Shown here piece after piece: positions 9,715 through 64,000 of a stretch of DNA of 64,000 nucleotides (position 1 is its first letter; each line of letters begins with the position of its first letter). The stretch lies in the NCBI GenBank assembly GCA_977017575.1, contig CDRNVI010000043.1, positions 186,001 to 250,000 on the forward strand, in the 5' to 3' direction. A model generated the notes under the pieces. That model did no database searches, was not told the origin of the DNA, and was given only the letters and a program-made list of their open reading frames with translations. The translations under genes were made by a program, and so were the position numbers. Source of the stretch: Paramoeba atlantica. Lineage: Eukaryota > Protista > Discosea.

Positions 9715-10167
9715 ATTCAACTTGGCGAAAAAACTGGTAAACACAATATTTTTTTAAAATCGTTTCCCCTGTTGTATTTTGATAGTTTGGGACCTACATT
9801 AGCTTTCTGCGCCGTTGTTTTCACAAGGTACCCCTTCTTGGAGCCGTGCTGTGCCTAGAAAAATGACCCATTTTTGACTAAAAGCAAAATAGCATTATCT
9901 ACCCAATACGTTCGATAGGCTTTCATTCATGCCTACGAGTGATTTCTCACACGCAAATATCAGATTTAGTGCTCTGAGAGCAAAAATACCCTGAAATGAC
10001 CCCATTTTTACCCGAAAATCGGCTACTTTTGGCTATAATCTTTCCGTTTTCTTCAGCTTTCCAGACCAAATTTTCTTTTTTAGGCTCTTCGTTAAACGCG
10101 GTGGTCAACGCGAAGCGCGCAGCATGAGTGACTTCTAAGTTGAAAACAACCACCACGTTTAACGAAG
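9715..10167 (-). repeat. Dispersed repeat, partial inverted copy C
   Basis: Reverse complement of the first half of copies A/B (e.g. aatcgtttcccctgttgtattttgatagtttgggacctaca). Confidence 0.85.
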
Positions 10168-19800: not shown

Positions 19801-22800
19801 TGCGTTGCATCGCCAAGCTTTTTTCGAGGCTGCAAATGAAGTTTGCTTAGTTCATCGTTTTCCGAAGAAACAGATAAAGCAGTAGTTGAACCTTCTAATA
19901 CAGTTCTAGACGCTACCTTCTTTATATGTTTCTGTGATGCACTGTACTTCGAACATAACGAAACTAGAAGCCCGGTAACCATTTTCCAAAGAGCCCGAAA
20001 TACGGAAACAGGATCCGAGCACACTTTCTGAGACAAGATACTGCGAAATGGTGCCGGTAAACCAATTGTATCCTTGTACTCATGTCTTGTCGCGGTACAT
20101 TTCGTGCTGTCCTGGTCATGTAGCATACAACTAATCAAGTGCTCGTGCAAAACCCCGAGTGCAACAGGAAACGTGTGACACAATAGCTGAAGAATGAATA
20201 CACAGTGCTCGGATAGTGGAGTGTACTTGCAAAACATAAGACCTAATAAATGGGATGTAACAATTTCAATAACGCAATCTGATTCCAATGAGTCAATGTT
20301 AGTACGCACAACTTCTCGTAGATTGTGTAGTGCGCTGATTTTCAGTCGAGAAGTTTCAACAAGAAGCGGATCCAGTTTTTCGGCATCCGTGCACAATCTA
20401 ATAGCTGGATGATCGACAAGTTTTTGACTTAACAAAAGAGCATTATACCGCATGTCGGGGTGAGGGTGACGTAAAAATTTTTTAACAACATCGAAGCGGG
20501 CTTCCGACTTCCAATAAGTGCTAGACGTTGCTCGCACTATAACCTTTAACATTTCTGGAGAAAACAGAAAGCGATCCGAAGTATTCACTTGCTCGGAAGC
20601 ATCGTCCATGTGAATACGTTCCGTAACAAGTTGCAAAATATCTTCGAGAGCAGTAAGTGCAAGATCGGCCATTGTGTAGCTTTGCGATCCTGTTTCACCA
20701 GTAAGCACGGGACGCACCACTCGACACTCATCGCCGTTGAACGAACTTGTCACTACGTACCACAGATTCGCTATACAATTGTCAGTAAATACAATGTCCG
20801 CGTGATCAACATGCCATTTGTTTTCAAGTACATATTGAACCCATTCATTCATCAGACGTGTTGAATCTTCCAATTTTTCTATGTCACTGACAGATATCCA
20901 CCCAATAACTTTAAAATAATTAGAGATAAATGTCCTTTCATCAGGAACGTCAGTCTTCGATAGCGCATTAAGAACTCTACTGAAGGCACCTTGATTCACT
21001 TTGAGATTTACCAGCCAATTGTAGAGATCAAAATTTATAGCGATTTTAGTGCTATCGCCGTTTCGAACAATACATGAACTCTTCTTTCTTTTCATTGTGG
21101 TCGCTTTATCACATTTTAAAGACCATTCGCTGGGTTCCGCTTTATCTTCCCCTATAATCAGAGTTTCGCGTGAGTCTATAATGCAGGGACACAATGCAGC
21201 TAACAAATCTACAATACAGGGAATCATGTCTCTCGAACTAGAAACAATGTCGTGTGTTTCCATCTCTAAAGCGTAAATGTTCCTCTTGATTGCATCAGTC
21301 AGCGACTCCAGTAGCACAGGTAATATGCCGTAATCAAAAGATTCACCTGTCGTATTCATCCAAAATCTTGTGGCTGATGTGACTGATCTAATTCCATTCG
21401 CAGTAACAAATACATCGCTAAGAGTTTCTTGCAGCAATTTTTGAAAAATATCTGATGCATCATAGCAGGGATCTACCTTGGGGTACAATTTCACTATTTC
21501 CATGCAATAATAAGCGCAAAGATGCTGAGACTCAATGCATTTGTGCAAGACTTTGCCATCTGTTTGGCTCCCACTTTGTATGCTATCTCTGATCTCAAGC
21601 GCTAAGCGTAAGAGCCGATTAAAAAACATCGATTCCTTCATATTCATTGCTCGAGGTGCACTATCCAATACTTTTGTGATAAATACGAAGCAGATGTACG
21701 CGCTTGGATGAATACTGGTCTTTTCAAAATTCTGCTCTTTGTTTCGCTTTTGTGCAAAATCGATTTCCTGGCAAATGCAGTTGAATAGAAGATCCACATC
21801 GGATGAGGCCAATTTCTGCGAATAGCAAAGCTTTTTTAACGCGACTGCTGCAGCAGTAGGAATATAACTTAGAGAAAAAGAATGATCTACGCCGATGGGA
21901 GTTGAACTGCGCATTGAGACTCTTAGTGCTGCGCTAAACATGGACGCTGCATTTCGATGTAGATTCCCAACTAAAGTCCCTCTTGATACATTGTACAAAA
22001 GTGAAGACAAAAAGGAAGTTGCAAGTTTTGTACAACGCTCACGCTTCTTATCCAAGCTCCTAATCACTGTCGTGATAATGTGAAATAGCGTGACAAGGTA
22101 AGGCTCTATTTCCTCCGAAGCCACAACTTTGAGGGGAAATTCACACGCATTTGCGACCAATTGCCTCAGGGGCGCACTATCCGATAATAACATTGGCAAC
22201 AAAGCAAGAATAAGCTGCTTCCATTTAAGTAGGCGTTGACTGTTTTCTGTTTCTGTTTCCGTTTCATTGTTATCCCACACAACACTTATTCGTCTCTGCC
22301 AAAGGCAGCGAACTACAGTGTTCAGAACTGTACTTGTAACGTTCATGAAGGCCTCGTTCTGGATGACATTAGGAAGTGGTGACAGTGAGACTTCCTGGAC
22401 TGCAAAACTCAGATCGTCTGAAGTTCGTCCAAGATTTGTAAATATTACCCCAAACAATAGATAGCCAACACTGCCAAGTAGGACGCGGGGCAAGTGTAGA
22501 ATCGCGTTGTCGCCTGCATCCAGCACAATTGCAATAAGAAGTTTGAGGAGCTGGGGATGATTCGGCGTAATTGAGCTACCATTATACAGAAATGAAGTTT
22601 CAGATTTCTTCTGGACAGTGAATGACTGAGCCATTTTTGAGAGCTCCGTGTCATTAATAATAGTTTTTTTAGCGGAGAACGTTGGAGTTTTCCCTCCAAA
22701 AAAGACTGTGCCACACTCTTCCCGCAGTGCACCATGCACGAGCTCGATACAAGTTTGTACATTTAACTTTATTGAGGCAACATTACCTATCATGGTCTGT

Positions 22801-36662: not shown

Positions 36663-36783
36663 TGAGAGTGTTGCCAATCCCTGGTCAGTAATCGGCCCAG
36701 GGACATAGCAACTCCCCATTATCTCGGGCGTAGTAAACACGCCTTGGCTTGCCTGGCACTGAGATCAGCCATTGGAAAAAAAA
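36663..36783 (-). repeat. 3' terminal segment A of the YR element
   Basis: 121 bp, reverse complement of 42258-42378 with a single mismatch. Confidence 0.95.
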
Positions 36784-37338
36784 CGCATTTTTTTCGTTAG
36801 AGGCCTCCTTTCTCAGCCCAGGGGCTTCCCACTTAAGGGGCCCGTTCCCACAACCAAGTGATCTCCCCGGCAACACGATTTCATTCGTGCGTCAAGAAGG
36901 CTGGGCTATGGGACCAGGGAGCTCTAGAACAAGTGCAGCAACTTGTGAGCCTAATTCGACATGAAATGATAGTGGGATTAAATTAGTTCATAGTAAAACT
37001 AAATTATACATTGCATGTACTGAAAACATAAAAAAGGAAAAATAACACGCGCATAGCTTATTATGCGATCTTAAAAGATTTTGTGTTTCAAAATATTTAC
37101 ATGGTCATAAACAAAAACCCAGTAAAAGCAAATTACCTGTAAATTTTAGATTCTCCATTTTCTTATTTTGTCGAATCATTCGACTCGAATGCTGACGGGG
37201 TTCCTACTCTCACTCTGTGCGTGGACCTTTGACGAGTTGGCTACGGATTTTCCGTAACTGGAGCAATAGAGATGAAAATACTGGTTCATTTTTTTAGTGT
37301 AGTCCATTCGCCTTCGCAGCTTCGTTTACTTGTCAATC

Positions 37339-37767
37339 TCAGATTATGATTGGGTCCATATGTGAGAGAGCGATTTCGATTCCTCCGGGCAACAGACCGT
37401 CTTTGACTCGGAATCCGAACTCTTCCCGCGTTAGGCCGTCTGCTGGATTCTCCTTAGATTTGAGATAAAAGATGCGAAACGATAGCCCAGTCTTTCTCCT
37501 TTCTTCGATGTCTAGGAGCTGCTGACAAATTGAATGTCGAACTGATGTGCGCTTTTGGAGTGCCCGCACAACGTCCATATTATCGCATCCTAGAATCACA
37601 TGGGGAGCAAGTTTCCACCCTGTGATTAAGGCGGCTTTTGCCGCAGAGAACTCAGCATCGTATATCTCCCGATACAAGTATTGGAATACTTTCTTGCAGC
37701 AAAATTTCTCCCGATTGACGGAGTACGCATAAACCAGTGTGGGTCGAAGATGCGTCCGAAAAAGCAA
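37339..37767 (-). CDS. RNase H C-terminal part of the YR element pol (out of frame with RT)
   Basis: IYDAEFSAA, LGCDNMDVV, SKENPADGLTR: DIRS-type RNase H E/D/D motifs. Confidence 0.85.
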   Translation of the reverse strand: MLFRTHLRPTLVYAYSVNREKFCCKKVFQYLYREIYDAEFSAAKAALITGWKLAPHVILGCDNMDVVRALQKRTSVRHSICQQLLDIEERRKTGLSFRIFYLKSKENPADGLTREEFGFRVKDGLLPGGIEIALSHMDPIII

Positions 37768-39094
37768 GAACGAGATGGGATATTGGAATTGGCGGTAATG
37801 CGCAACTTCTCTTGTTACTCAATATACGCACTACATGCATGCTCAAGAGCTTTAAGTCTTCGCTCTTCAATTTGTAAAAGCTTTCTTCGGATTGGTGCGA
37901 TATCTCTTTCGCGATCATTCGAACATCATAGACTGAAGCAAAGGAGGATTGGGTGACCATTGTATCCCACATGATCACACCTATCACCCTCTTTATGTCT
38001 CGCACGGTCGTAGGTGACACGGTTTCTAGTACTCTCCAACGAGCAATGTTAGATTCAGCGTGTTTCCAAAATAATTTGTCTATTTCCCAAGAGAACTCTA
38101 TTCCTAAAAATAGGGCTTGATCACATGGGCCGTCGATATATTTCCATTCGACGTTGCAACCCGTTGGCAGTCTCTTCATGCTTTTCATGAGTTGCGATCT
38201 TAACTGACTTAAAAAACCTTCGTTGCTAGATATGACCAACACATTGTCAATCCAAACAAATACTGCACCTTGTTTTGCTTTTGTCTTCTTATTTATCGCC
38301 CACGCGAATGCCGGAGGTGATTCAGATGTGTCTCGGACAGGTAACATCTCATGACCTGTAGGACAAGCCGCTAAAACAATTATCCATGCCAGACATTGGG
38401 CAAGATAAGGAGCCCAAGAGAACCCCATTGGGAGAACTCGCAACTCGAAAGTCTTGTCCTCGCATTTTATTGAGAATATGCGACCCAAGCCTGATGGGAT
38501 TCGTATTTGATGAAAGAAATGACGAATGTCCGCAATCAAGAATTTTCCACCTGGAAAGCATGATAAGATGTGTGTGACTTCTGCGAGAGCTGGAAAGTTT
38601 AGGCTAGGGGGAGTAGCGCATCTATCGTTTATAGGGGTGCCATCTACGATGCTCCGAGATGAAATTTCATCTTTTGGCACTTCAAAGTATCGGAAATAAA
38701 GGCGAGAATCATTACGAAAATCCTGAACTCTGCGCAGTACTTCATACGAACAAAGCTCAGCTAAGTGATCACGCCATTTTGCTTCAGAATGTACCCCAAG
38801 TTTCCCACGAAAGCCTTCGAATTCCGTGAAAAGACGAAATGAGTGTTCATCAGTGAGTATGGTAAGGCACTTTTTTCCCCACGTGTACGTGCTTCGAGAT
38901 GCAATAGCGCATAGAGTATCGATATGAAGACGACCTGCAACCGAAATGGGATCAAGGGCCCGTTGCTTTAGCGTACAGGACTTTTGGAGGACTGCACCAT
39001 ATGCCGTTCCATATGCTAGGTTGTCCGCGGGTTCGTTCACTAATACTATATTATATCCCAACGTCAAAAGACGAATAAACCTACGTTTATTCAT
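37652..39094 (-). CDS. Reverse transcriptase plus RNase H N-terminus (DIRS/VIPER-type)
   Basis: LIADIRHFFHQI, LPMGFSWAP, VWIDNVLV, FLGIEF, AFSDASSTHTG. Confidence 0.92.
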   Translation of the reverse strand: MNKRRFIRLLTLGYNIVLVNEPADNLAYGTAYGAVLQKSCTLKQRALDPISVAGRLHIDTLCAIASRSTYTWGKKCLTILTDEHSFRLFTEFEGFRGKLGVHSEAKWRDHLAELCSYEVLRRVQDFRNDSRLYFRYFEVPKDEISSRSIVDGTPINDRCATPPSLNFPALAEVTHILSCFPGGKFLIADIRHFFHQIRIPSGLGRIFSIKCEDKTFELRVLPMGFSWAPYLAQCLAWIIVLAACPTGHEMLPVRDTSESPPAFAWAINKKTKAKQGAVFVWIDNVLVISSNEGFLSQLRSQLMKSMKRLPTGCNVEWKYIDGPCDQALFLGIEFSWEIDKLFWKHAESNIARWRVLETVSPTTVRDIKRVIGVIMWDTMVTQSSFASVYDVRMIAKEISHQSEESFYKLKSEDLKLLSMHVVRILSNKRSCALPPIPISHLVLAFSDASSTHTGLCVLRQSGEILLQESIPILVSGDIRC

Positions 39095-39438
39095 TAGTAA
39101 TCAAATGGCGGAATGCATAGCTGTGCGCCACATAAGAAATAATCGTTGTACAAGACAAACTTGTACAAGACACGTATGATATCACGTAGAGATTTAGCAC
39201 ATTATTGGAGGAAGGTCTCATAGTTGTAACACTCGATTTGTAACGACTCTCTTTTTTATAGCTTCCAACTTCTTTCACTTAACGTTTCGACTTGAAAACC
39301 AAACTTTTAGTATCTTTAATTTAGTGAAACAAGTCTCCAAGGAACTAGTTTACATGGAACTAACTATATTATGAACTGATTACGCAGAACTAAGGTAGGA
39401 GAAAATCACGCGAGTGGCTTTTTGTTTCTTTCCGTTCT

Positions 39439-40320
39439 CTAATCATGCACTTGAGAATGCGGTGCTAAGTAGTGCTTCTGTCTCACCTGTCTCGACATGC
39501 CCGACAGTGCACTGGACATCATGTCAGCGACGTTTTCTACTATGGCCCCAGTACCACCATGTCTCAGAGTGTGAGTTCCATCAAAAGTCACTCCAGATGG
39601 CCATCCCAGTTCGGTGGATGCTCTTTTTACAAGTTTACTCGTGGATCTTTTCTTGTACGCCGGAAACGCAAGGTCTCCATGTGTTACGTCACGCAGGGCA
39701 TTTCGCACTTCTTCGGTTGCAACATGAGTAAGAGGTTTGCACCTTTGCTTATCAGTTGAGTAACTCTTTGTTTTATCGTGGCGGATGAGAAGATGAGACC
39801 AAGAGCCTTCTACACGCAAATCCCCGCCACGTATCTTCTCCACTTCACAGGATCGAAGAGCAGCGTAGTATTGCACGCGAAAAGCTCTTGCGAGCTGCGG
39901 CCCGTTAGCACGGGGTGTGACCCACCGTACAAGTTCGTGTAACATATTTTCTGATACATAGCCTCTGGGACATTTTTCTTGTCTATGCTGCTCTGCCTCA
40001 ACGGCAGCCCCGTCCACTGCCCGAAGTATGAGGCGGTCGCCTGCCCAGGGGCGTTCACCTGCTTCGAGGTCAAAGCTTTGACATTCCTGATAGAAGAGCA
40101 AGGCACTGCGGTAACCTTGAAAAGTCGATTTGGCGCATCCAACCGATGCGTGATGCCACAAAAAACATCCGAACGCTTCTTTCGTTATTTTTTCGAATCC
40201 TCGGTTCTTGCAAAACTTTCGTAAAGCAGCAAATCGGGCCTCGTACATCCTTCGCGTTCCGGGTGCAATCGACTTTAATGCCAGAGCTGCCAGATACCCT
40301 TCGCAAGAATCTTTCTGCAT
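39439..40320 (-). CDS. Tyrosine recombinase
   Basis: SIAPGTRRMY N-terminus; catalytic R (ALRSCE), K (HDKTK), HxxR (HTLRHGG), Y (KHY). Confidence 0.92.
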   Translation of the reverse strand: MQKDSCEGYLAALALKSIAPGTRRMYEARFAALRKFCKNRGFEKITKEAFGCFLWHHASVGCAKSTFQGYRSALLFYQECQSFDLEAGERPWAGDRLILRAVDGAAVEAEQHRQEKCPRGYVSENMLHELVRWVTPRANGPQLARAFRVQYYAALRSCEVEKIRGGDLRVEGSWSHLLIRHDKTKSYSTDKQRCKPLTHVATEEVRNALRDVTHGDLAFPAYKKRSTSKLVKRASTELGWPSGVTFDGTHTLRHGGTGAIVENVADMMSSALSGMSRQVRQKHYLAPHSQVHD

Positions 40321-40915
40321 CTAAAAGTATGCAAAAATACTCAATGTGTGTGATTACATGGTTTATTTACATATACCGTATGCAATCTCATATCTTCAAC
40401 GGAATGGCCAGTTTAATATATTTAACTTTCCATGTGTAAAATAGCGGATGAAATAACAGACTGCTTTGTTGTAGACACACTTATTCATTCAGTTCATTAT
40501 GTCTTATGGTTTCCCCGATTTTCAAGGAGAAACTGCACCATATTATGACTTACTTTTAATCTGGATGCCACCCATTTGACCCTTTTTGGTATTCCAACAA
40601 ATTGTGCTTAATGATTAGGCACCTACGTACTAGATACACTGTATGTTAATCTGATAGGAATAATTATCACACTTTCCCTCACTATACATGTATTACTTAA
40701 CGTCTAAGTAATGTGCAAAGCCCATTTTCTTTACACAATGTCTATGCTGTATAAAGGCGTCTGTTGTGTGTGAGTGTCACTCGTTGTATGACAAATACGC
40801 ACAATCCTAATGATCTGCACAAGCAAATAATAATATTCGTGCTCTATGTTCAGCCCAAACATGAATCTGATTAAGAAAAACTAAAACATACATCTATTGC
40901 CCCCAAGATCGGCAA

Positions 40916-41959
40916 TTACGGCCCCTTTTCATGTTTATTCTTTCGATCGTTCATTTCCCGAGAAATCTTTTCTGGCCGTTCTTGGCCTTTGACGAAACCT
41001 TCTCGATTAGAACGATAAGATCGAGGGGCATACAAATTTACTGGTCGCGGGCGGTTGAAATAACGCACATCCGGCCCAAATGTTCTTCTGTTGTTTTGGA
41101 CCATGCCTCCCCGTCCATAGCCTGAAGTACTATTTTGGAAGGATTTCGCCTTCAAAAGAGTCTCCGGTATAGTTACGGAGTCGGTCTCTGGGAGCAATCC
41201 GACGTTCTTGCGGCAAAGAAGAAGAGATTCCTCTTTCTTTACGTCGTCAAAATCGGCGCTGAACACAAGAAAATGAGCAGCGAGTTCTAGAAGGAAATGG
41301 TTAGCTGCTATTGATACCGCCTTGTTTTCTTGTGCCGCCTTGGGGGATACACCTTTTCCTGCTTGCGTAAGCATCTCCTTGAAGAAAATAGCGTAGCGGG
41401 TTAGAAGAAAGCTTTCGGCCCATTTTTGAAACTTCGGGTTGTGCACTGCCTCCCACAGTTGCTCTCCAAGGTGAGGACGATTCTCCGTGCCTGTCCATAC
41501 GGTAAGTTGCCCGTCCTCCTTTTCTCCTTCCCGTGCTTTCATTTTCTTTGGCTCCTTCGGGGGGTCCAGCATGAGGGAAACCAAAATTCCTCGATGTTCT
41601 TCGTTTCCAATCAAATTCTCGAATCCGGAGACGTCCTGTGTTCGGCGGACACCCAAAAGTTTGGCTGTAAAACTTGCTTTTTCACTGAGGGTTTCTCCCC
41701 TTAATACCTTTTCAACGAAATCCATGATTGCACTTGCGCATTCGTCTTCGCTGATTTCCGCCATAAATTTGACAAGGAGATTCACATCGACTGCGCGCTC
41801 AAAACGTAGAGAAATTTTTATGCTCGTTTTCGTCGAGCATGCCTGGTCGACTACGCTATCGACGTTTGCGTCAAAGTGGTGAGTGTGGCCGACTATAGGA
41901 ACTGAGCGGCTTTGTGAAGCTTGGGGTGAGGTAGCTACGGAGGGTCGTTTCTTCGGCAT
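40916..41959 (-). CDS. Gag-like ORF1 of the YR element (assigned by position)
   Basis: 347-aa ORF first in element order, with basic R/G/P-rich C-terminus; no zinc knuckle seen. Confidence 0.6.
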   Translation of the reverse strand: MPKKRPSVATSPQASQSRSVPIVGHTHHFDANVDSVVDQACSTKTSIKISLRFERAVDVNLLVKFMAEISEDECASAIMDFVEKVLRGETLSEKASFTAKLLGVRRTQDVSGFENLIGNEEHRGILVSLMLDPPKEPKKMKAREGEKEDGQLTVWTGTENRPHLGEQLWEAVHNPKFQKWAESFLLTRYAIFFKEMLTQAGKGVSPKAAQENKAVSIAANHFLLELAAHFLVFSADFDDVKKEESLLLCRKNVGLLPETDSVTIPETLLKAKSFQNSTSGYGRGGMVQNNRRTFGPDVRYFNRPRPVNLYAPRSYRSNREGFVKGQERPEKISREMNDRKNKHEKGP

Positions 41960-42257
41960 AAGAAATAAAATTTAGAGCAAGTTCCTACGCATGTTTTAAT
42001 AGATTAGATACGGTTGTGACTTATCCTGGTCATCTTTGCTCTCTCATTCTATATTCACCCTTTCTGTATTTCCACCCTCACGCTCGCCAGAATATGGATA
42101 CTTGCTGACTGCTTTATGTCAGCATATTCCTGTTTCTCTCTGTTTTCTCTCTCGCTCTTTTTCCTTACTACTTCAAGCAATCGGCGAAACTAATGTATTC
42201 ATCTATACATACGCCTTCTGTATTTTTTTTTCTGCTTTCTATTCTTTCGTCTTTCTT

Positions 42258-42421
42258 TTTTTTTTCCAATGGCTGATCTCAGTGCCAGGCAAGCCAAGGC
42301 GTGTTTACTACGCCCGAGATAATGGGGAGTTGCTATGTCCCTGGGCCGATTACTGACCAGGGATTGGCAACACCCTCATTATCACAGGCTTCATAAGCAC
42401 CTTGATACCGGGACCAAGCCC
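42258..42421. other. Internal complementary region (ICR): reverse complement of the joined element ends
   Basis: 42258-42378 mirrors 36663-36783; 42376-42421 mirrors 43872-43918; they overlap on TCA/TGA. Confidence 0.9.
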
Positions 42422-42819
42422 AGTGACAGGCATGCCCATTGGCACCGCAGATCAGTTCCCTCCTCCCCTTCTTGTCATCATTCTAGGTTTTCAAACGTGA
42501 GACAAAACTCTAAGGGGCGTGGAATCTGTTGAGCATCTTTTATTAGATACTTCACACAGATGCGTAGCCGTAAAGGCATTGCATTCGAAATCCGTGGAAT
42601 AATGAACGCAGTGCAAAACTGACCCGACTGCGCAAGTCGTATAAGGTGCGTCACACTGACGAATCCATTTTGTTTTTCTTTCTATCCATTTTTTTTTCTT
42701 TACTTCCAGTACCCTGGAAAGCAACACAGACAGCAGTGGTACTGTGTGATGATCAGCAATATTTGCTTACAATAATCATTAAATTTACGACTACGAGAAG
42801 CCAATCCTCAATGATCACT

Positions 42820-43488
42820 CGAAGTGAAGTGCCAACCGTCAGTCCCGAAGGACTTCGAGGCAAAGTATAACCACCAACCGTCAGTTCCGAAGAACCCCGA
42901 GGTGAAGTGCCAACCGTCAGTCCCGAAGGACCTCGAGGCAAAGTATAACCACCAACCGTCAATTCCGAAGAACCTCGAGGTGAAGTGCCAACCGTCAGTC
43001 CCGAAGGACCTCGAGGCGAAGTATAACCACCAACCGTCAATTCCGAAGAACCTCGAGGTGAAGTGCCAACCGTCAGTCCCGAAGGACCTCGAGGCAAAGT
43101 ATAACCACCAACGGTCAGTTCCGAAGAACCTCGAGGTGAAGTGCCAACCGTCAGTCCCGAAGGACCTCGAGGCAAAGTAAAACCACCAACCGTCAGTTCC
43201 GAAGAACCTCGAGGTGAAGTGCCAACCGTCAGTCCCGAAGGACCTCGAGGCAAAGTAAAACCACCAACCGTCAGTTCCGAAGAACCTCGAGGTGAAGTGC
43301 CAACCGTCAGTGCCGAAGGACCTCGAGGCAAAGTAAAACCACCAACCGTCAGTTCCGAAGAACCTCGAGGTGAAGTGCCAACCGTCAGTCCCGAAGGACC
43401 TCGAGGCAAAGTGTAACCACCAACCGTCAGTTCCGAAGAACCTCAAGGTGAAGTGCCAACCGTCAGTCCCGAAAGACCTCGAGGCAAA
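42820..43488. repeat. 78-bp tandem repeat, ~8.5 copies, inside the YR element leader
   Basis: gaagtgccaaccgtcagtcccgaaggacctcgaggcaaagtaWaaccaccaaccgtcagttccgaagaacctcgaggt. Confidence 0.95.
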
Positions 43489-43832
43489 TAATAAATTGTT
43501 ATTATAATAATAATAATCGTCGACCGTGAGTCACAAATTTCCTCGAAGTAGTTCATTTTGGCGCCGAACGGTATGTTTTCCCCGGTCAGGGCCAAAACGA
43601 ACCGGAATAAAATCACTAATTTAGTGCCAGGCTCGGTTCCACATAGCATGTCAACATGTAAATAAAATTTATATCCTATCTTTGGGTCGGAACCAAGGAT
43701 TATAGTGTGTATATTCAACAAACCTGTATGTTCAAACAAATCAGTATGTTCAACAAACCTGTATGTTTAACAAACGAAGAGATGGACAAATATATTAAAA
43801 AAAAAAGTCGTACCTTATCGTACAATAAAACT

Positions 43833-43905
43833 CTTCACCCTCACACTTCGTCTTGTTAAGAAGACGACGCCGGGCTTGGGACCGGTATCAAGCGTGTTTA
43901 TGAAG
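43833..43905 (-). ncRNA. Twister self-cleaving ribozyme (P1 type, with P5 hairpin)
   Basis: Minus strand: P1 CUUCA, L1 UAA, P2 ACAC, GC, UUGAUA, P4 CCGG, L4 UCCCAAGC, CCGG, P5 UCGUCUU/AAGACGA, P2' GUGU, GAGGG, P1' UGAAG. Confidence 0.93.
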
Positions 43906-44173
43906 CCTGTGATAATGATAGTTTTAAGAAAAAAAACGCACCTTTTGGACCACTCGAGGCACCCCTTCTTCGAAAGCAATTTGAAAACTCGAATTTCCCA
44001 CATACATGCTTTTTTCAACTGGAAGCGTGTGATACGCAAGACCGTAGAGGAAGGAGGAGGCGAAAGGTAAGAAGCAGAAGGCAGAGCCGGTTAATGACGG
44101 GTTATACTGCGCCCAATTATTTTTATTTTGCACAAAGTTGTACGCGAAGAAGTTTATATTATAAACTATTTTA

Positions 44174-44925
44174 TATACACCCATGGACAGAAGTGTGCCC
44201 CCGGCCTGGCAAATGTGAATTTTTTTTACCCGTTTTTTCTCATTTTTGCAGCATTCGAGAGATCTCGTTCCCCTAGCGAAGAGCTTTGCCGCCTTTGCTT
44301 CATAGGGACCCCCTGGTACCCCCTGTTTCCAAAAAACATGGTTTTATTGCCCGTTTTTTGGAACACAGTCAATTTCTCTAGTATATTATCTTTTTTTCTA
44401 CCTGTTTTTTCTTCATGAGGACCCTGCCTCGTATAAATCATAACGAAACATCGTTTTGTCGATTTCGGAGCGAACAGAGATAGTCAAACAGCATAAATCC
44501 ACACAACTTTGTAGTTTTAAGCCACACAACTATGTAACCCTGACAAAGGCCACAGGAAAGGCGTTTAATGCTCTAAAACGTGCCCCACATAGATAGAAGG
44601 TGTTGAATTCCATCAAATCTGTTCCTAAACGTATGCAAATAGTTATTCAGACCAATGGGGAGCATTGCGGATATTGATACTTCTTCCTTTTTTCTCATTT
44701 TCTCATTGAAAGGGTGATTTTTTTTCTAGATGTCTAATGCACCATTTTTTGTTTTTGGTCTACTTCGGGGTCACCACCAGAGCACCAGGGGGTCCCTATG
44801 AAAAAAAGGCGGCAAAGCTCTTCGCTAGGGGAACGAGATCGCTCGAATGCTGCAAAAATGAGAAAAAACGGATAAAAAAATGGCATTTGCCAGACCGGGG
44901 GCACACTTCTGTCCATGGGTGTATA
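44174..44925. mobile_element. MITE with ~150-bp TIRs
   Basis: TA-tacacccatggacagaagtgtgcccccgg...cataggg mirrored at 44785-44925. Confidence 0.85.
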
Positions 44926-47553
44926 TTATATTTCCTCCTTTCTCGTCTTTGTTGTCTATGAAGCCGAAAGAAGTGGAGAAATGCATTGCCCTGTATAAAC
45001 TTTGGTTCAAAAGAACCACGTGGAAGGAACGTCTGCAATCATTACTCCTCTGTCCAAAAATTCGGGCAGTGCCTGCCGAATATAAATGAAAAGGAAAATG
45101 AAAGTGAATTGTTTTATCATGCACTTATAGTGCAGAGATTTACTCACCATGTCCTTATCCCGCATACGACGGGTGGATCATGTGAGGTTTCGTCCTCGCC
45201 GGAGGTGTGCGGGTGCGGAGAGCTGGCGTCCCAGGTGCAGAGAGCTCGGTTGTCATGTGCAGGTGCAGAGAGCCGGATGCGTAATCCCCATATTACAGTT
45301 TCGGGGGCAATCCGGGTGCAGAGAGCTGCGACAGAGCCGAGGTGCGGAGAGCTGGGCGACCGCCAGGTGCAGAGAACCGAGTCTCGTCGGCGGAGGACAC
45401 GTCTAGTGGTCCTCAAGGGAGGCCACCGTGACGCATGGCCCTCTCGGAGAGGAAAAAGACAAGTCGAAAAAAGCCGAGAGGGGGAAGCACACTCACTCCA
45501 GGGGAGTGAGTCGGGGAGGGGTGAAGGGGTGAAAGCGCGTCCCCTGCTTCAGCGACATGAGGGACAGTTCCGACTTTAGTGCCGGCCGGCAACGGGCATA
45601 AAAATACAGTAAGAGCATGCCCGTTGCCGGGGAAAGAAAGGATTAACTAAGGAAAAAGTACCAAGGTACAGAAACTGTATCTTTCGAAAAAGAGGAACAA
45701 TGTGAGCAATATATTTACTATCCCCCTTATTTAATAGGGCTACGTGTCACCCGCCCTTTAATAGGGCTATTTTGTCTGGAAGGCCAAAAATTATTTCTGG
45801 GAAAGTGCCAATAAGTTGTCGAATGCGCCGCGAAGCGGCGTATTTTCTTTTCCGCATCTACCCCAACAACCAAAAGTGTATCAAAAGGGAGTAGGACCCT
45901 GTTTCACAACGATAAAAAAAGCACCGCGAAGCGGCGCCGATTTTTTTTCCATATTATTTTCCATCTCCACCCCCCCCCACTTTATTTGGGCTTTTTGCCC
46001 AAAATCGGAGTCCTATTAAATAGGGGGGGATAGTATATGAAAGAGGCAGAAGAAACAGCAACGGAGGCAGAAGACACAGAGTCATGAAACTTGATCCAAA
46101 GTTTCATGAATATGTGAAGGAATGTGTGAAGTGAGGGGTGGTTTAAGGAGTGTGAATTAAGATGTATGTTGAAGACGGAGTCAAATTTTATTATTTTCAT
46201 AATTATTTGTGACAGAAGTGGAGTCCTAAGGAGGATTTGTGCTCGAAAATCTGGCATAAAAGAAAATTTTGTGATAAAAGATGAAGTTGTGTCTGAAAAA
46301 TGCATGAGCACGTTTTTCTATATACAGTATTGTATTTTTTAGGAATGGGCGCAACATAACCCGTCTGTAGCCGTTAATTCGATAGAGCGGTCTTTCTGTG
46401 GTAAGGTACGGTACTCACATACACCGTACACATGTATGTGCATGAGGACAAAGAGCGGACTGTGATATTGAATGCGTGATGTGTCCACAGCGACGACACT
46501 TGAGATGGAGATAGTGACCCATGCTATCCTTCATGCGTGGATCATTTCCTTCGTGCTTTTGTCTCCAACGAGCGCACACAGGATCATCCGGTGAGCAAAT
46601 TGCGTCCTACCAACAGGTCTGTACACTGGAACTATTTTAAATCGTAAATAATTTAGGAGGGAAGAACCTGTGTGTCTCCGAGTGGCTGAAGTCTTTGCTG
46701 GAGACTGGGGAACGTAATGTTGTTGCACAGCCGCCTTTCTCCCAATGCGTTGTACGCCGCTCGGCGTTCTCTGCAGGACTGCAACTCACCAGTCTCGGGT
46801 GTAATGTCCCGAGAGGAACTTTCCTCGTTTGTGGGAAGTGATGTGCCCCACCGTTTTCGGGAGCGAAGCACAATAGAATAAGGTTTGGTTGAATAAGAAA
46901 ATTAGATTTTCTCTAATAGATACCAAATTTCTCAAATAGAACTAAATAAATGATTTCAAGAGACATGATTCCATTCTACATACGTTTCCATTGTCACATA
47001 ATGTTTTCATTATCACTGGTTAACCATTAATTCATTGGTTAATTAATTAATTGACTATTAGGGTATGATTATCGTACCACTATTGCAGTATTGAAACATT
47101 CTCTCAATAGTACTCCATGTAACTAAACGTGCCGCATTGATGACCACTCTTTCCAACAGAAAATATCAATTTAAGCTCTTTTTTCGCGATCAGTTTAAAA
47201 TATAGTTTAAAATATTTAGAAGAATATCAAATAGAAAGAAGATAAATGATGAATCAGATTGGGGCAAGATATTTTAAGATTTTTCATTTCGCAAGACTTT
47301 TTTGTACTAACCTCTTATGAGAATATAAATACTTATGATGATGGAAATTTCAAACTTCGACTAAACAGGGAATTGTCGACTCTTAAATTATGGAGGATAT
47401 TACTGTAACCAATTAAAACATTTACAAAACAAATACTAATGCTAAACTCTACAAAAATTATATGCTGGGAAACATAGATTGTATTAGACAACAAAACTGT
47501 AGACTTCAATGGTTCGAATTTTAGAAAGAATACATGGGCACTTGTGTTTTCCG

Positions 47554-61804: not shown

Positions 61805-62560
61805 TCAAATTGTACACAACTCTTTTGCAAGAAACCCCGCCGCCTGGCGCATCCATTCCGCCGGACGCACACTATTATGATCCCCCTCGACCCGTACCAA
61901 AGTACACTTCCCACCATAACCCCTTCTTACTTTCTCACTATGCTCCACTGGCACCAACCCATCTTCAGTACCATGCACCATCATGCACGCACACCCACAC
62001 TTCCTCGCATCCTCCGCCACATCCAACTCTCCGAGCTCCATCCCCGACCGCTCCCTCAACGCATCCCCCAGTCCTCTCACCACCGTATCCCCAACCACTC
62101 TCGGAACCCACCACGCCCCCAGTCCTGTACGCTCCAACACGAGTTGTTGTAACGAACAAAACACACTATCCAGGACCAACGCCCTCACGATCCCACCCCC
62201 TCCTTGCCCCCCCTCCCTCTCATCCCCCCCGTGCGGAGGACAGCCCCTCCCCTCCCCCCGTTCCCCCCCCCACCGGGCCGCGTACCTCACCGCGGTGGCT
62301 GCGCCCATACTCCGCCCCCACAGCCCGACCCGATCCACCCCTTGCGCCCGCACGTACCCCACCACCGTCCCCAGGTCCCCCGCCTCGTGGTACCCCAGCG
62401 TGACGAGGTCCCCCGTGCTGGCGCCGCAGCCCGCAAAGTCAAAGCAGAGGACCGTGAGGGGGTGGTGGGGGAGGAGGTGGGGGAGCAGCGCGGTGGCCTC
62501 GCGGCGGGACCCCGCGTTGCCGTGGCAGTAGATCACACAGGGGAGGGAGCGGAAGGGAGG
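61805..62560 (-). CDS. Alpha/beta hydrolase (ABHD17/S33-like) catalytic domain; 5' part lies upstream through the repeat
   Basis: PCVIYCHGN, FDFAGCG, GRSMGA (nucleophile), HGTEDGLV, GDHN; no in-frame ATG upstream of GRSMGA. Confidence 0.88.
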   Translation of the reverse strand, partial: PPFRSLPCVIYCHGNAGSRREATALLPHLLPHHPLTVLCFDFAGCGASTGDLVTLGYHEAGDLGTVVGYVRAQGVDRVGLWGRSMGAATAVRYAARWGGERGEGRGCPPHGGDEREGGQGGGGIVRALVLDSVFCSLQQLVLERTGLGAWWVPRVVGDTVVRGLGDALRERSGMELGELDVAEDARKCGCACMMVHGTEDGLVPVEHSEKVRRGYGGKCTLVRVEGDHNSVRPAEWMRQAAGFLAKELCTI

Positions 62561-62569
62561 GGGGGGGAG

Positions 62570-64000
62570 TGGTAGTAGTCGTCGTACTCGTGTTACGCGG
62601 GATGCTCGTAGTAGGGGTAGTACTCGTGTTACTCGGGATATTTGTAGTAGTAGTCGTACTCGTGTTACTCGGGATATTTGTAGTAGGGGTAGTACTCGTG
62701 TTACTCGGGATATTTGCAGTAGGGGTAGTAGTCGTGTTACTCGGGATATTTGCAGTAGGGGTAGTACTCGTGTTACTCGGGATATTTGCAGTAGGGGTAG
62801 TACTCGTGTTACTGGGGATATTTGCAGTAGGGGTAGTACTTGTGTTACTCGGGATATTTGTAGTAGGGGTAGTACTCGTGTTACTCGGGATATTTGTAGT
62901 AGGGGTAGTACTCGTGTTACTCGGGATATTTGTAGTAGGGGTAGTACTTGTGTTACTGGGGATATTTGTAGTAGGGGTAGTACTCGTGTTACTCGGGATA
63001 TTTGCAGTAGGGGTAGTACTCGTGTTACTGGGGATATTTGCAGTAGGGGTAGTACTTGTGTTACTCGGGATATTTGTAGTAGGGGTAGTACTCGTGTTAC
63101 TCGGGATATTTGTAGTAGGGGTAGTACTCGTGTTACTCGGGATATTTGCAGTAGGGGTAGTACTTGTGTTACTCGGGATATTTGTAGTAGTAGTCGTACT
63201 CGTGTTACTGGGGATATTTGCGGTAGTAGTCGCACTCGTGTTACTCGGGATATTTGCAGTAGGGGTAGTACTCGTGTTACTCGGGATATTTGCAGTAGGG
63301 GTAGTACTTGTGTTACTCGGGATATTTGCAGTAGGGGTAGTACTCGTGTTACTCGGGATATTTGCAGTAGGGGTAGTACTCGTGTTACTCGGGATATTTG
63401 CAGTAGGGGTAGTACTTGTGTTACTCGGGATATTTGTAGTAGTAGTCGTACTCGTGTTACTGGGGATATTTGCGGTAGTAGTCGCACTCGTGTTACTCGG
63501 GATATTTGCAGTAGGGGTAGTACTCGTGTTACTCGGGATATTTGCAGTAGGGGTAGTACTTGTGTTACTCGGGATATTTGCAGTAGGGGTAGTACTCGTG
63601 TTACTCGGGATATTTGCAGTAGGGGTAGTACTCGTGTTACTCGGGATATTTGCAGTAGGGGTAGTACTTGTGTTACTCGGGATATTTGCAGTAGGGGTAG
63701 TACTCGTGTTACTCGGGATATTTGCAGTAGGGGTAGTACTCGTGTTACTCGGGATATTTGCAGTAGGGGTAGTACTTGTGTTACTCGGGATATTTGTAGT
63801 AGTAGTCGTACTCGTGTTACTGGGGATATTTGCGGTAGTAGTCGCACTCGTGTTACTCGGGATATTTGCAGTAGGGGTAGTACTCGTGTTACTCGGGATA
63901 TTTGCAGTAGGGGTAGTACTCGTGTTACTCGGGATATTTGCAGTAGGGGTAGTACTCGTGTTACTCGGGATATTTGCAGTAGGGGTAGTACTCGTGTTAC
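62570..64000 (-). repeat. 36-bp tandem array (~40 copies, runs off the window), probably coding TANIPSNTSTTP repeats
   Basis: Unit tactcgtgttactcgggatatttgcagtaggggtag; open minus frame act gca aat atc ccg agt aac acg agt act acc cct. Confidence 0.9.

Follow-up and report, generated by a model that had tools for sequence, protein, structure and literature searches.

A tyrosine recombinase retrotransposon with a putative 5' twister-type ribozyme and an inverted copy of its end junction in the leader

The replication of DIRS-type retrotransposons is still largely a model. In DIRS-1, the internal complementary region (ICR) is essential, as its deletion abolishes retrotransposition, and it is thought to restore ends that are missing from the transcript; furthermore, its circle junction has been described as containing a trinucleotide, and priming of the complementary DNA (cDNA) by a 3' hairpin has been proposed (PMC7192593). 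The TATE elements are site specific for telomeric repeats (PMC6681497, PMC12278014). Ribozymes have been described at the 5' ends of elements that lack long terminal repeats (non-LTR elements), namely, hepatitis delta virus-like ribozymes in R2 and in the Pr77 sequence of L1Tc/ingi (PMC12278014) and twister variants in the Schistosoma element Perere-3 (PMC8501958). Here we describe a 7256-bp element that brings together features of these systems. It is located in a 64,000-nucleotide (nt) stretch of contig CDRNVI010000043.1 (assembly GCA_977017575.1, deposited as Paramoeba atlantica), referred to as the window. All coordinates are those of the window unless another contig is named, and the element is read 5' to 3' on the minus strand, from 43918 to 36663. 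On the basis of comparative sequence data, we propose that it is probably a tyrosine recombinase (YR) retrotransposon of the DIRS order from a kinetoplastid-like euglenozoan, with the gene order of VIPER/TATE, a DIRS-1-like replication and a twister-type ribozyme that sets the 5' end of its RNA.

Along the minus strand, the element (36663-43918) consists of a 5' terminal repeat, B, with a twister-type ribozyme motif; a 78-bp tandem array; the ICR, composed of the reverse complements of B and of the 3' terminal repeat A, rc(B)+rc(A); genes for a gag-like protein, a YR, and a reverse transcriptase (RT)/RNase H; and the terminal repeat A. All parts were found where a preliminary description of this DNA had placed them. 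Further copies were identified on other contigs of the same assembly (ENA metagenome assembly ERZ24900291, in which the window belongs to contig ctg3950l). Two of these, reached via protein-cluster look-ups, are ~98% identical to the window copy and are located at L003:311-12383, with a ~5-kb non-LTR insertion inside, and at L004:4737-11690. The copies on L069 and L070 were reached via homologues of the recombinase, which share 63% and 53% identity with the window protein, respectively; both copies are decayed and their genes are fragmented. Nevertheless, they show the same succession of a twister motif, a tandem array, and an rc(B)+rc(A)-type segment.

The comparison with described elements revealed similarities to several of them and identity with none. 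As in DIRS-1 and DIRS1-like elements, an RT/RNase H is combined with a YR, there is no target-site duplication, an ICR is present, and the junction contains a short, lineage-specific core (PMC7192593). Of these features, the RT/RNase H with a YR in place of a DDE integrase or endonuclease and the insertion without duplication at a short core common to element and target define the DIRS order. However, two features that define DIRS1 elements are absent: DIRS-1 has long inverted terminal repeats, whereas the two ends of the element described here are unrelated, and the ICR of DIRS-1 is located beside the right repeat, downstream of the genes, whereas here it precedes gag. In addition, no ribozyme has been reported for DIRS-1, whereas the 5' end of the present transcript is apparently set by a ribozyme, and no methyltransferase domain was detected. 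Resemblance to VIPER and TATE concerns the host group, the order of the gag-like, YR, and RT/RNase H genes, and the absence of target duplication (PMC6681497, PMC12278014). These elements differ in having split direct repeats (A1 ... B1 A2 B2), with a direct junction copy near the 3' end instead of an inverted copy 5' of the genes, and their descriptions include neither a ribozyme nor a leader array. Ngaro and PAT have split direct repeats and an RT gene that precedes YR, neither of which was found here. With R2, L1Tc/ingi, and Perere-3 the element would have in common a self-cleaving RNA at the very 5' end, which would free its RNA from an upstream cotranscript, but those elements integrate by target-primed reverse transcription. 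The 5' strand of stem P1 that is lost on cleavage is provided by the target-site duplication in Perere-3 (PMC8501958), whereas here it is apparently recopied from the ICR. CRE, SLACS, and CZAR likewise insert into spliced-leader sequence (PMC12278014); however, they use a restriction-like endonuclease and a fixed position in spliced-leader RNA genes, whereas the element described here has a YR with a CA core, and two of its five insertions are in spliced-leader relics at the 5' ends of non-LTR elements, with the others at loosely similar sites. Full-text literature searches retrieved no paper that pairs a twister, or any self-cleaving ribozyme, with a YR retrotransposon, and none on a YR retrotransposon targeted to the spliced leader; the accession of the assembly is not cited in any paper found. 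In accordance with the preliminary description, which knew of no such combination, a DIRS-order element with a 5' ribozyme thus appears to be new for this class of retrotransposons.

The limits of the element are defined by its copies. Homology with the L003 and L004 copies begins at the base matching 43916-43918 and stops at the base matching 36663, with unrelated DNA beyond. Both copies therefore have the same ends as the window copy, with a precision limited by the common core, as had been predicted, and rather than terminating at 42378 they include the twister-bearing segment 42380-43918. Rejoining the L003 flanks gives CGATAAAGAT-ACA-GTTTCTGTACC, a sequence that was found uninterrupted at three other places. 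Empty sites hence exist for the whole composite, which indicates that the twister-bearing leader belongs to the element. As judged from these comparisons, it is confirmed that 43918-36663 is a single mobile unit and represents a real, well-bounded element family. Every prediction of the preliminary description that sequence comparison can address came out as proposed, which lends support to its outline of the element.

Each of the two ends pairs with an internal segment only. The 5' terminal repeat B (43872-43918, minus strand) forms an inverted repeat with 42369-42421; the match extends over 43872-43925, with real homology from 43918, and the first 19 nt of B (43918-43900) lie upstream of the predicted cleavage site. 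The 3' terminal repeat A (36663-36783, minus strand) comprises 121 nt and is 99% complementary to rc(A) at 42258-42378. Within the ICR (42258-42421, minus strand), rc(B) (42421-42369) abuts rc(A) (42378-42258), and the segment corresponds exactly to the reverse complement of a junction between the 3' and the 5' end of the element. It is located in the leader, between the tandem array and gag. No repeat connects 43918-43700 with 36663-36783, and no long direct repeats join the element ends; all long repeats are inverted. These matches bear out the earlier claim of mutually unrelated ends and an ICR in the 5' leader. The same ICR structure was found in L003, L004, L069, and L070, and the base at which rc(B) meets rc(A) is constant across four lineages and families. 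Within elements, A shares 95 to 100% identity with rc(A), whereas the A and ICR regions are ~70% identical between lineages.

A terminates in a stable hairpin that comprises its last ~50 nt, with z values of -4.3 in the window (36663-36722), -7.9 at L069:12960-13023, and -2.5 at L002:6538-6600, the latter in a related element that is described below. This hairpin is kept in three lineages despite their different sequences and recalls the 3' hairpin of DIRS-1 that was proposed to prime cDNA synthesis. It sets the element end opposite an internal GATAATG motif, and in the L069 fold the addition of the first bases of B would extend the stem across the junction. The recombination site may thus be presented as a folded single strand.

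B of each element was aligned with the B-like sequence encoded by its own ICR. B positions 1 to 21 of the window copy are identical to the ICR-encoded copy, and the same applies to L003 except for its initial base, which derives from the target. With 1 to 4 mismatches, this pattern is also retained in the decayed copies of L004, L069, and L070. The proximal stretch of B is lineage specific (CACAGGCTTCAT, CACAG-CTCCAT, and CACAGCCATTG), and each change is mirrored in the ICR of the same lineage. From position 22 on, over the next ~30 nt, B and ICR differ by A versus G, by a 1-nt insertion or deletion, and by TC versus GA, and these differences are the same in all three lineages. Mirrored proximal and shared distal differences indicate that the proximal part of B has been homogenized with the ICR, whereas its distal part began to diverge independently before the separation of the lineages. 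The boundary of homogenization (21/22) is 2 nt from the predicted twister cut (19|20). This is the footprint expected of a cycle in which the cut defines the start of the RNA and the ICR serves in every round as template for the bases that were lost. The proposal that the ICR restores lost terminal bases is thus backed by data from three lineages.

The twister-type ribozyme (43833-43905, minus strand) is of type P1, lacks P3, and has an extra P5 hairpin; its assignment is based on an Rfam match, on folding, and on a custom model. In a permissive 2-kb search, the Rfam twister-P1 family (RF03160, clan CL00120) matched 43834-43904(-) with 37.4 bits and an E value of 4.8e-6, and both the L003 and the L004 copy gave the same match within their first ~90 nt (E value of 1e-4 in a 42-kb search of both). 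In the cmscan alignment, the conserved UAA, CCGGUCCCAAGCCCGG, and GAGGG blocks are identical to the Rfam model, and the conserved core is present, including the U-A cleavage site with AA, P1/P2/P4, the P4 loop UCCCAAGC, and GAGGG. Thermodynamic folding yields P1, P2, P4, and P5, and two pseudoknots, read from the sequence, are formable through loop CCC/GGG and GC/GC complementarity. By analogy to the U-A step at which twisters are cleaved (PMC8501958), the cut is predicted between U43900 and A43899, 19 nt inside the element, and the RNA would therefore lose the 5' strand of P1.

A custom covariance model built from the twister of the window family detects the 5' ends of the L069 and L070 elements (48 and 60 bits, respectively) and gave no further match in 412 kb, comprising the window, L002, and 63 related metagenome loci. 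These 63 loci, obtained in a metagenome scan for RT relatives, contained no twister detectable with a loose descriptor or the custom model; they are mostly contigs of 2 to 6 kb, few of which reach the 5' end of an element. Loose-descriptor matches at L009 and L003:16040 were discarded as coding or unrelated sequence. P2 and P4 are invariant across the window family, L069, and L070. P5 consists of three unrelated sequences that all pair, with five of the six pairs changed on both sides and 100% of the cells paired across the three lineages, in an alignment that was fitted to the model and thereby somewhat favors this result.

The coding region contains three genes, all on the minus strand. The gag-like open reading frame (ORF; 40916-41959) encodes 347 amino acids with a basic C terminus; it has no Pfam domain and shares 25% identity with the first ORF in the L002 relative. 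The YR (39439-40320, 293 amino acids) shows weak matches to Pfam Phage_int_SAM_4 and Phage_integrase and possesses the motifs R / HxxRH / Y. Its AlphaFold model (pLDDT of 77.6) matches Cre, XerH, IntI, and lambda Int over the full length, which points to a Cre-like fold. The RT/RNase H gene (37339-39094) is composed of the RT (37652-39094) and an RNase H part that extends to 37339 in another frame, since the window copy is broken within RNase H by a 2-nt difference in an ATATAT run near 37665. An intact version of 567 amino acids is present in L003 (P0009), and the RNase H residues D-E-D-D are conserved therein. Matches to RVT_1 and RNase H were obtained, a PDB profile match spans motif C through RNase H, and two relatives showed a weak hepadnavirus-type match for RNase H. 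In the L070 copy, a Tc1/mariner-type DDE_3 transposase is inserted within the YR gene (L070:8871-9881), and DDE_3 and hAT fragments are located near the L069 copy (L069:17180-17650 and 20362-20558); these contigs are rich in transposons.

Tandem arrays were observed in the leaders of the window family, L069, and L070. The 78-bp array of the window (42818-43488, minus strand) has 8.6 copies of 97% identity, and its copy number varies, with about 6 in L003 and fewer in L004. At the same relative position, L069 harbors a 124-bp unit repeated 4.9 times (L069:8011-8615) and L070 a 46-bp unit repeated 19.3 times (L070:5230-6129). The units of the three arrays have the short motif TC(G)AGGT(C/T) in common. 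Directly after the ribozyme and a T-run, 3.9 copies of a 17-nt repeat with the unit GGTTTGTTGAACATACA were found (43708-43775, minus strand). This unit is similar to the integration target and spliced leader (ATACAG..TTGTTGA), and the repeats could be trans-splice acceptors or recombinase sites. One may speculate that the T-run followed by the AG-containing repeats gives rise to an mRNA capped with the spliced leader.

The host was characterized through its spliced leader, whereas PDB and Pfam searches with neighboring genes did not establish its taxon. The string AAAGATACAGTTTCTGTACCTTG was encountered repeatedly, both in the window and on further contigs of the assembly. At some of these sites, GTAC and a conserved unit of ~260 nt come next, an arrangement resembling a spliced-leader RNA gene; at others, the string directly precedes retroposon ORFs. 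The core of this string, GATACAGTTTCTGTAC, shows full identity to spliced leaders published for euglenozoans (PMC3795323), from which we conclude that the host is a kinetoplastid-like euglenozoan; a kinetoplastid-type host had been assumed previously. Nearly all long ORFs of the window are on the minus strand and intronless, as exemplified by those for glutathione synthetase, mitochondrial EF-Tu, and a DEAH helicase. Units similar to spliced-leader RNA genes, with the exon end ...ACAGTTTCTGTACCTTG(TTG), GTAC, and the conserved ~260 nt, are present at 45398-45684 of the window (minus strand), L002:13732-14020, and L003:15200-15481. Their homology starts only at AAAGATACAG and the parts upstream differ, so that they may be truncated or retroposed spliced-leader RNA genes. 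One such unit is 1.5 kb upstream of the element and has the same orientation.

Comparison of the junctions with the empty site showed no target duplication, with CA alone common to the target and the joined ends; the left junction retains the base of the target before CA, and the right junction that of the element. Integration had initially been assigned to a TGA. This assignment has to be revised, as the core is CA, which reads TG on the plus strand, and the preferred flanks agree with the spliced-leader sequence. The L003 and L004 copies are inserted in spliced-leader sequence that forms the 5' end of apurinic/apyrimidinic endonuclease (APE)-type non-LTR copies, and their different upstream and downstream contexts indicate independent insertion events. 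The sites of the window, L069, and L070 copies are not spliced leaders; those of the window and L069 have ..A(T/A)CA|(G/T)TT.. in common, and the junction core of L070 is different. At L004, ~9 extra bases separate the spliced-leader half-site from the element at the 5' junction, and a ~442-bp tandem duplication (L004:11656-12545) spans the last 35 nt of the element and the adjoining flank. Non-LTR copies with APE, RT, and RNase H start with a nearly full spliced leader joined to the 5' untranslated region (L003:16216-16270, L004:15450-15510, and, in reverse, L003:9618-9651), which suggests that they were retrotransposed from trans-spliced mRNAs. If so, each new copy of this kind would be a new target for the YR element.

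These data can be combined into a model of the replication cycle. The element would be transcribed from upstream, and the twister would fold and cut U43900|A43899, giving an RNA without its first 19 nt, which include the 5' strand of its own P1. This RNA would be reverse transcribed, possibly primed by the conserved 3'-terminal hairpin of A. Both ends of the single-stranded cDNA would then pair next to each other with the complement of the internal rc(B)+rc(A) segment, the missing 19 to 21 nt and the A end would be copied from it, and the ends would be joined into a circle, a step that is supported by the pattern of concerted evolution. Finally, the YR would integrate the circle at a CA core without duplication, preferring ATACA|GTTT-like sites as found in the spliced leader; the junctions and empty sites are observed, and the action of the enzyme is deduced.

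A number of observations weigh against this interpretation. The twister score is below the RF03160 gathering score of 67.2, and an Rfam search of the whole window at gathering thresholds gave no match; the loss in score is due to the absent P3 and the 18-nt insertion that forms P5, and a U replaces the consensus GCC. P1 is unpaired in the L069 and L070 copies, and GAGGG is lost in L069. The concerted-evolution boundary would fit a fixed transcription start at this position equally well. At least one gene is broken in all three ~98% identical copies, that is, those of the window, L003, and L004. Furthermore, RT motif C (about 38290-38310 in the window) has the unusual form (W/Y)xDN instead of YxDD. 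Since D-N is invariant in 40 diverse relatives and occurs in 68 of 89 scored database matches, it is probably a trait of the clade and not a defect of the window copy, and the RT is probably functional. We know of no retroelement RT clade for which a D-N motif C has been described as a trait. Gene order is the same in the L002 relative (gag-like, YR, and RT/RNase H; 38 to 41% identity for RT and 52% for YR), but it has only the A/rc(A) pair: a non-LTR element with a restriction-like endonuclease abuts rc(A) and the contig then ends, and a search to both sides of the A repeats detected no B/rc(B) pair, nor was a twister detected in L002. As for the source of the RNA, host read-through had been suggested. 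This is possible for the window copy, which is co-oriented with the host gene array, but the L069 copy is antisense to its neighboring genes, and read-through can thus not be the general source. Lastly, cleavage, the 5' end of the RNA, cDNA, circles, and transcription are all deduced from sequence.

Read at their strongest, the low score, the unpaired P1 in L069 and L070, and the missing GAGGG in L069 could mean that the twister-like motif is an inactive relic or a look-alike, that a promoter or trans-splicing sets the 5' end of the RNA, and that B is kept for pairing with the ICR or for binding of the recombinase. The most conserved part of the motif indeed coincides with B, and a T-run followed by AG sites lies just downstream. 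We consider this explanation unlikely, because the motif is also kept outside B, where AAGUGUGAGGG is present in the window family and L070 and P5 shows compensatory changes in three lineages, because the boundary of recopying is so close to the canonical cut, and because those copies in which P1 is broken are decayed and have broken genes as well. If, on the other hand, the ribozyme is active, it might cut transcripts of tandem or circular templates; twister cleavage would then produce both ends of the unit-length RNA without loss of bases, and the ICR would be a mere splint that circularizes the cDNA. The ICR pairs to both sides of the cut, with 19 nt plus A to one side and with about 28 nt to the other, which fits this idea, as do the tandem clusters reported for the related TATE (PMC6681497). 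However, all five insertions are single copies flanked by unrelated DNA, and no A|B junction was found in any locus except for the inverted internal copy, which makes such templates improbable. It is even harder to sustain that two adjacent elements are involved, namely, a YR retroelement bounded by inverted terminal repeats (42378-36663) and an unrelated 1.5-kb nonautonomous B/rc(B) element. Each part does have its own flanking inverted repeat, and the L002 relative has the A/rc(A) pair only, but the outer ends of the composite are the same in three copies, the empty sites fit the composite, rc(B) and rc(A) abut at an identical base throughout, and neither part was seen alone in the window or in the aligned loci of the same assembly; we therefore regard this explanation as highly improbable. 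A YR retrotransposon with a ribozyme at its head is the interpretation that we favor. With more reserve, we suggest that it may stand for a clade of YR retrotransposons in which the 5' twister and the inverted junction copy work as one device, whose P1 strand is cut off and rebuilt in every cycle, and which homes to the spliced leader.

Several features were noted in the surroundings of these elements. At L002:2-1288, a non-LTR ORF is represented by its C-terminal part, which has a CCHC knuckle together with a CRE/R2-like PD-(D/E)xK motif of a restriction-like endonuclease; its 3' end is ~95 nt before rc(A) of the YR relative. Upstream of the element, the window contains two copies of a ~145-bp repeat (44173-44317 and 44784-44926, 94% identical), which matches the arms of an inverted-repeat unit in L002 (L002:9361-9531 and 9872-9953) that resembles a miniature inverted-repeat transposable element. 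The final part of the window (62001-64000) has a G+C content of 0.53 with strong GC and AT skew, compared to ~0.42 in the rest of the window.

Twisters are widespread, but to our knowledge the only ones with a demonstrated biological role are variants from the 5' end of one non-LTR family; the element described here would provide a second role, which differs in mechanism. If this is confirmed, the element would be the first of the DIRS order to bear a ribozyme and the first YR retroelement that targets the spliced leader, as well as a natural case in which comparative sequence marks an in vivo twister cleavage site. Because the bases upstream of the cut covary with the ICR and those downstream do not, the element also provides a natural setting in which to test whether the ICR restores missing ends, and the comparative data support this replication model. 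They further show that the junction copy can be located away from the 3' end and in the absence of inverted terminal repeats. Finally, the preference for the spliced leader would add a third class of retroelements, after CRE/SLACS, that exploits this hallmark of kinetoplastids.

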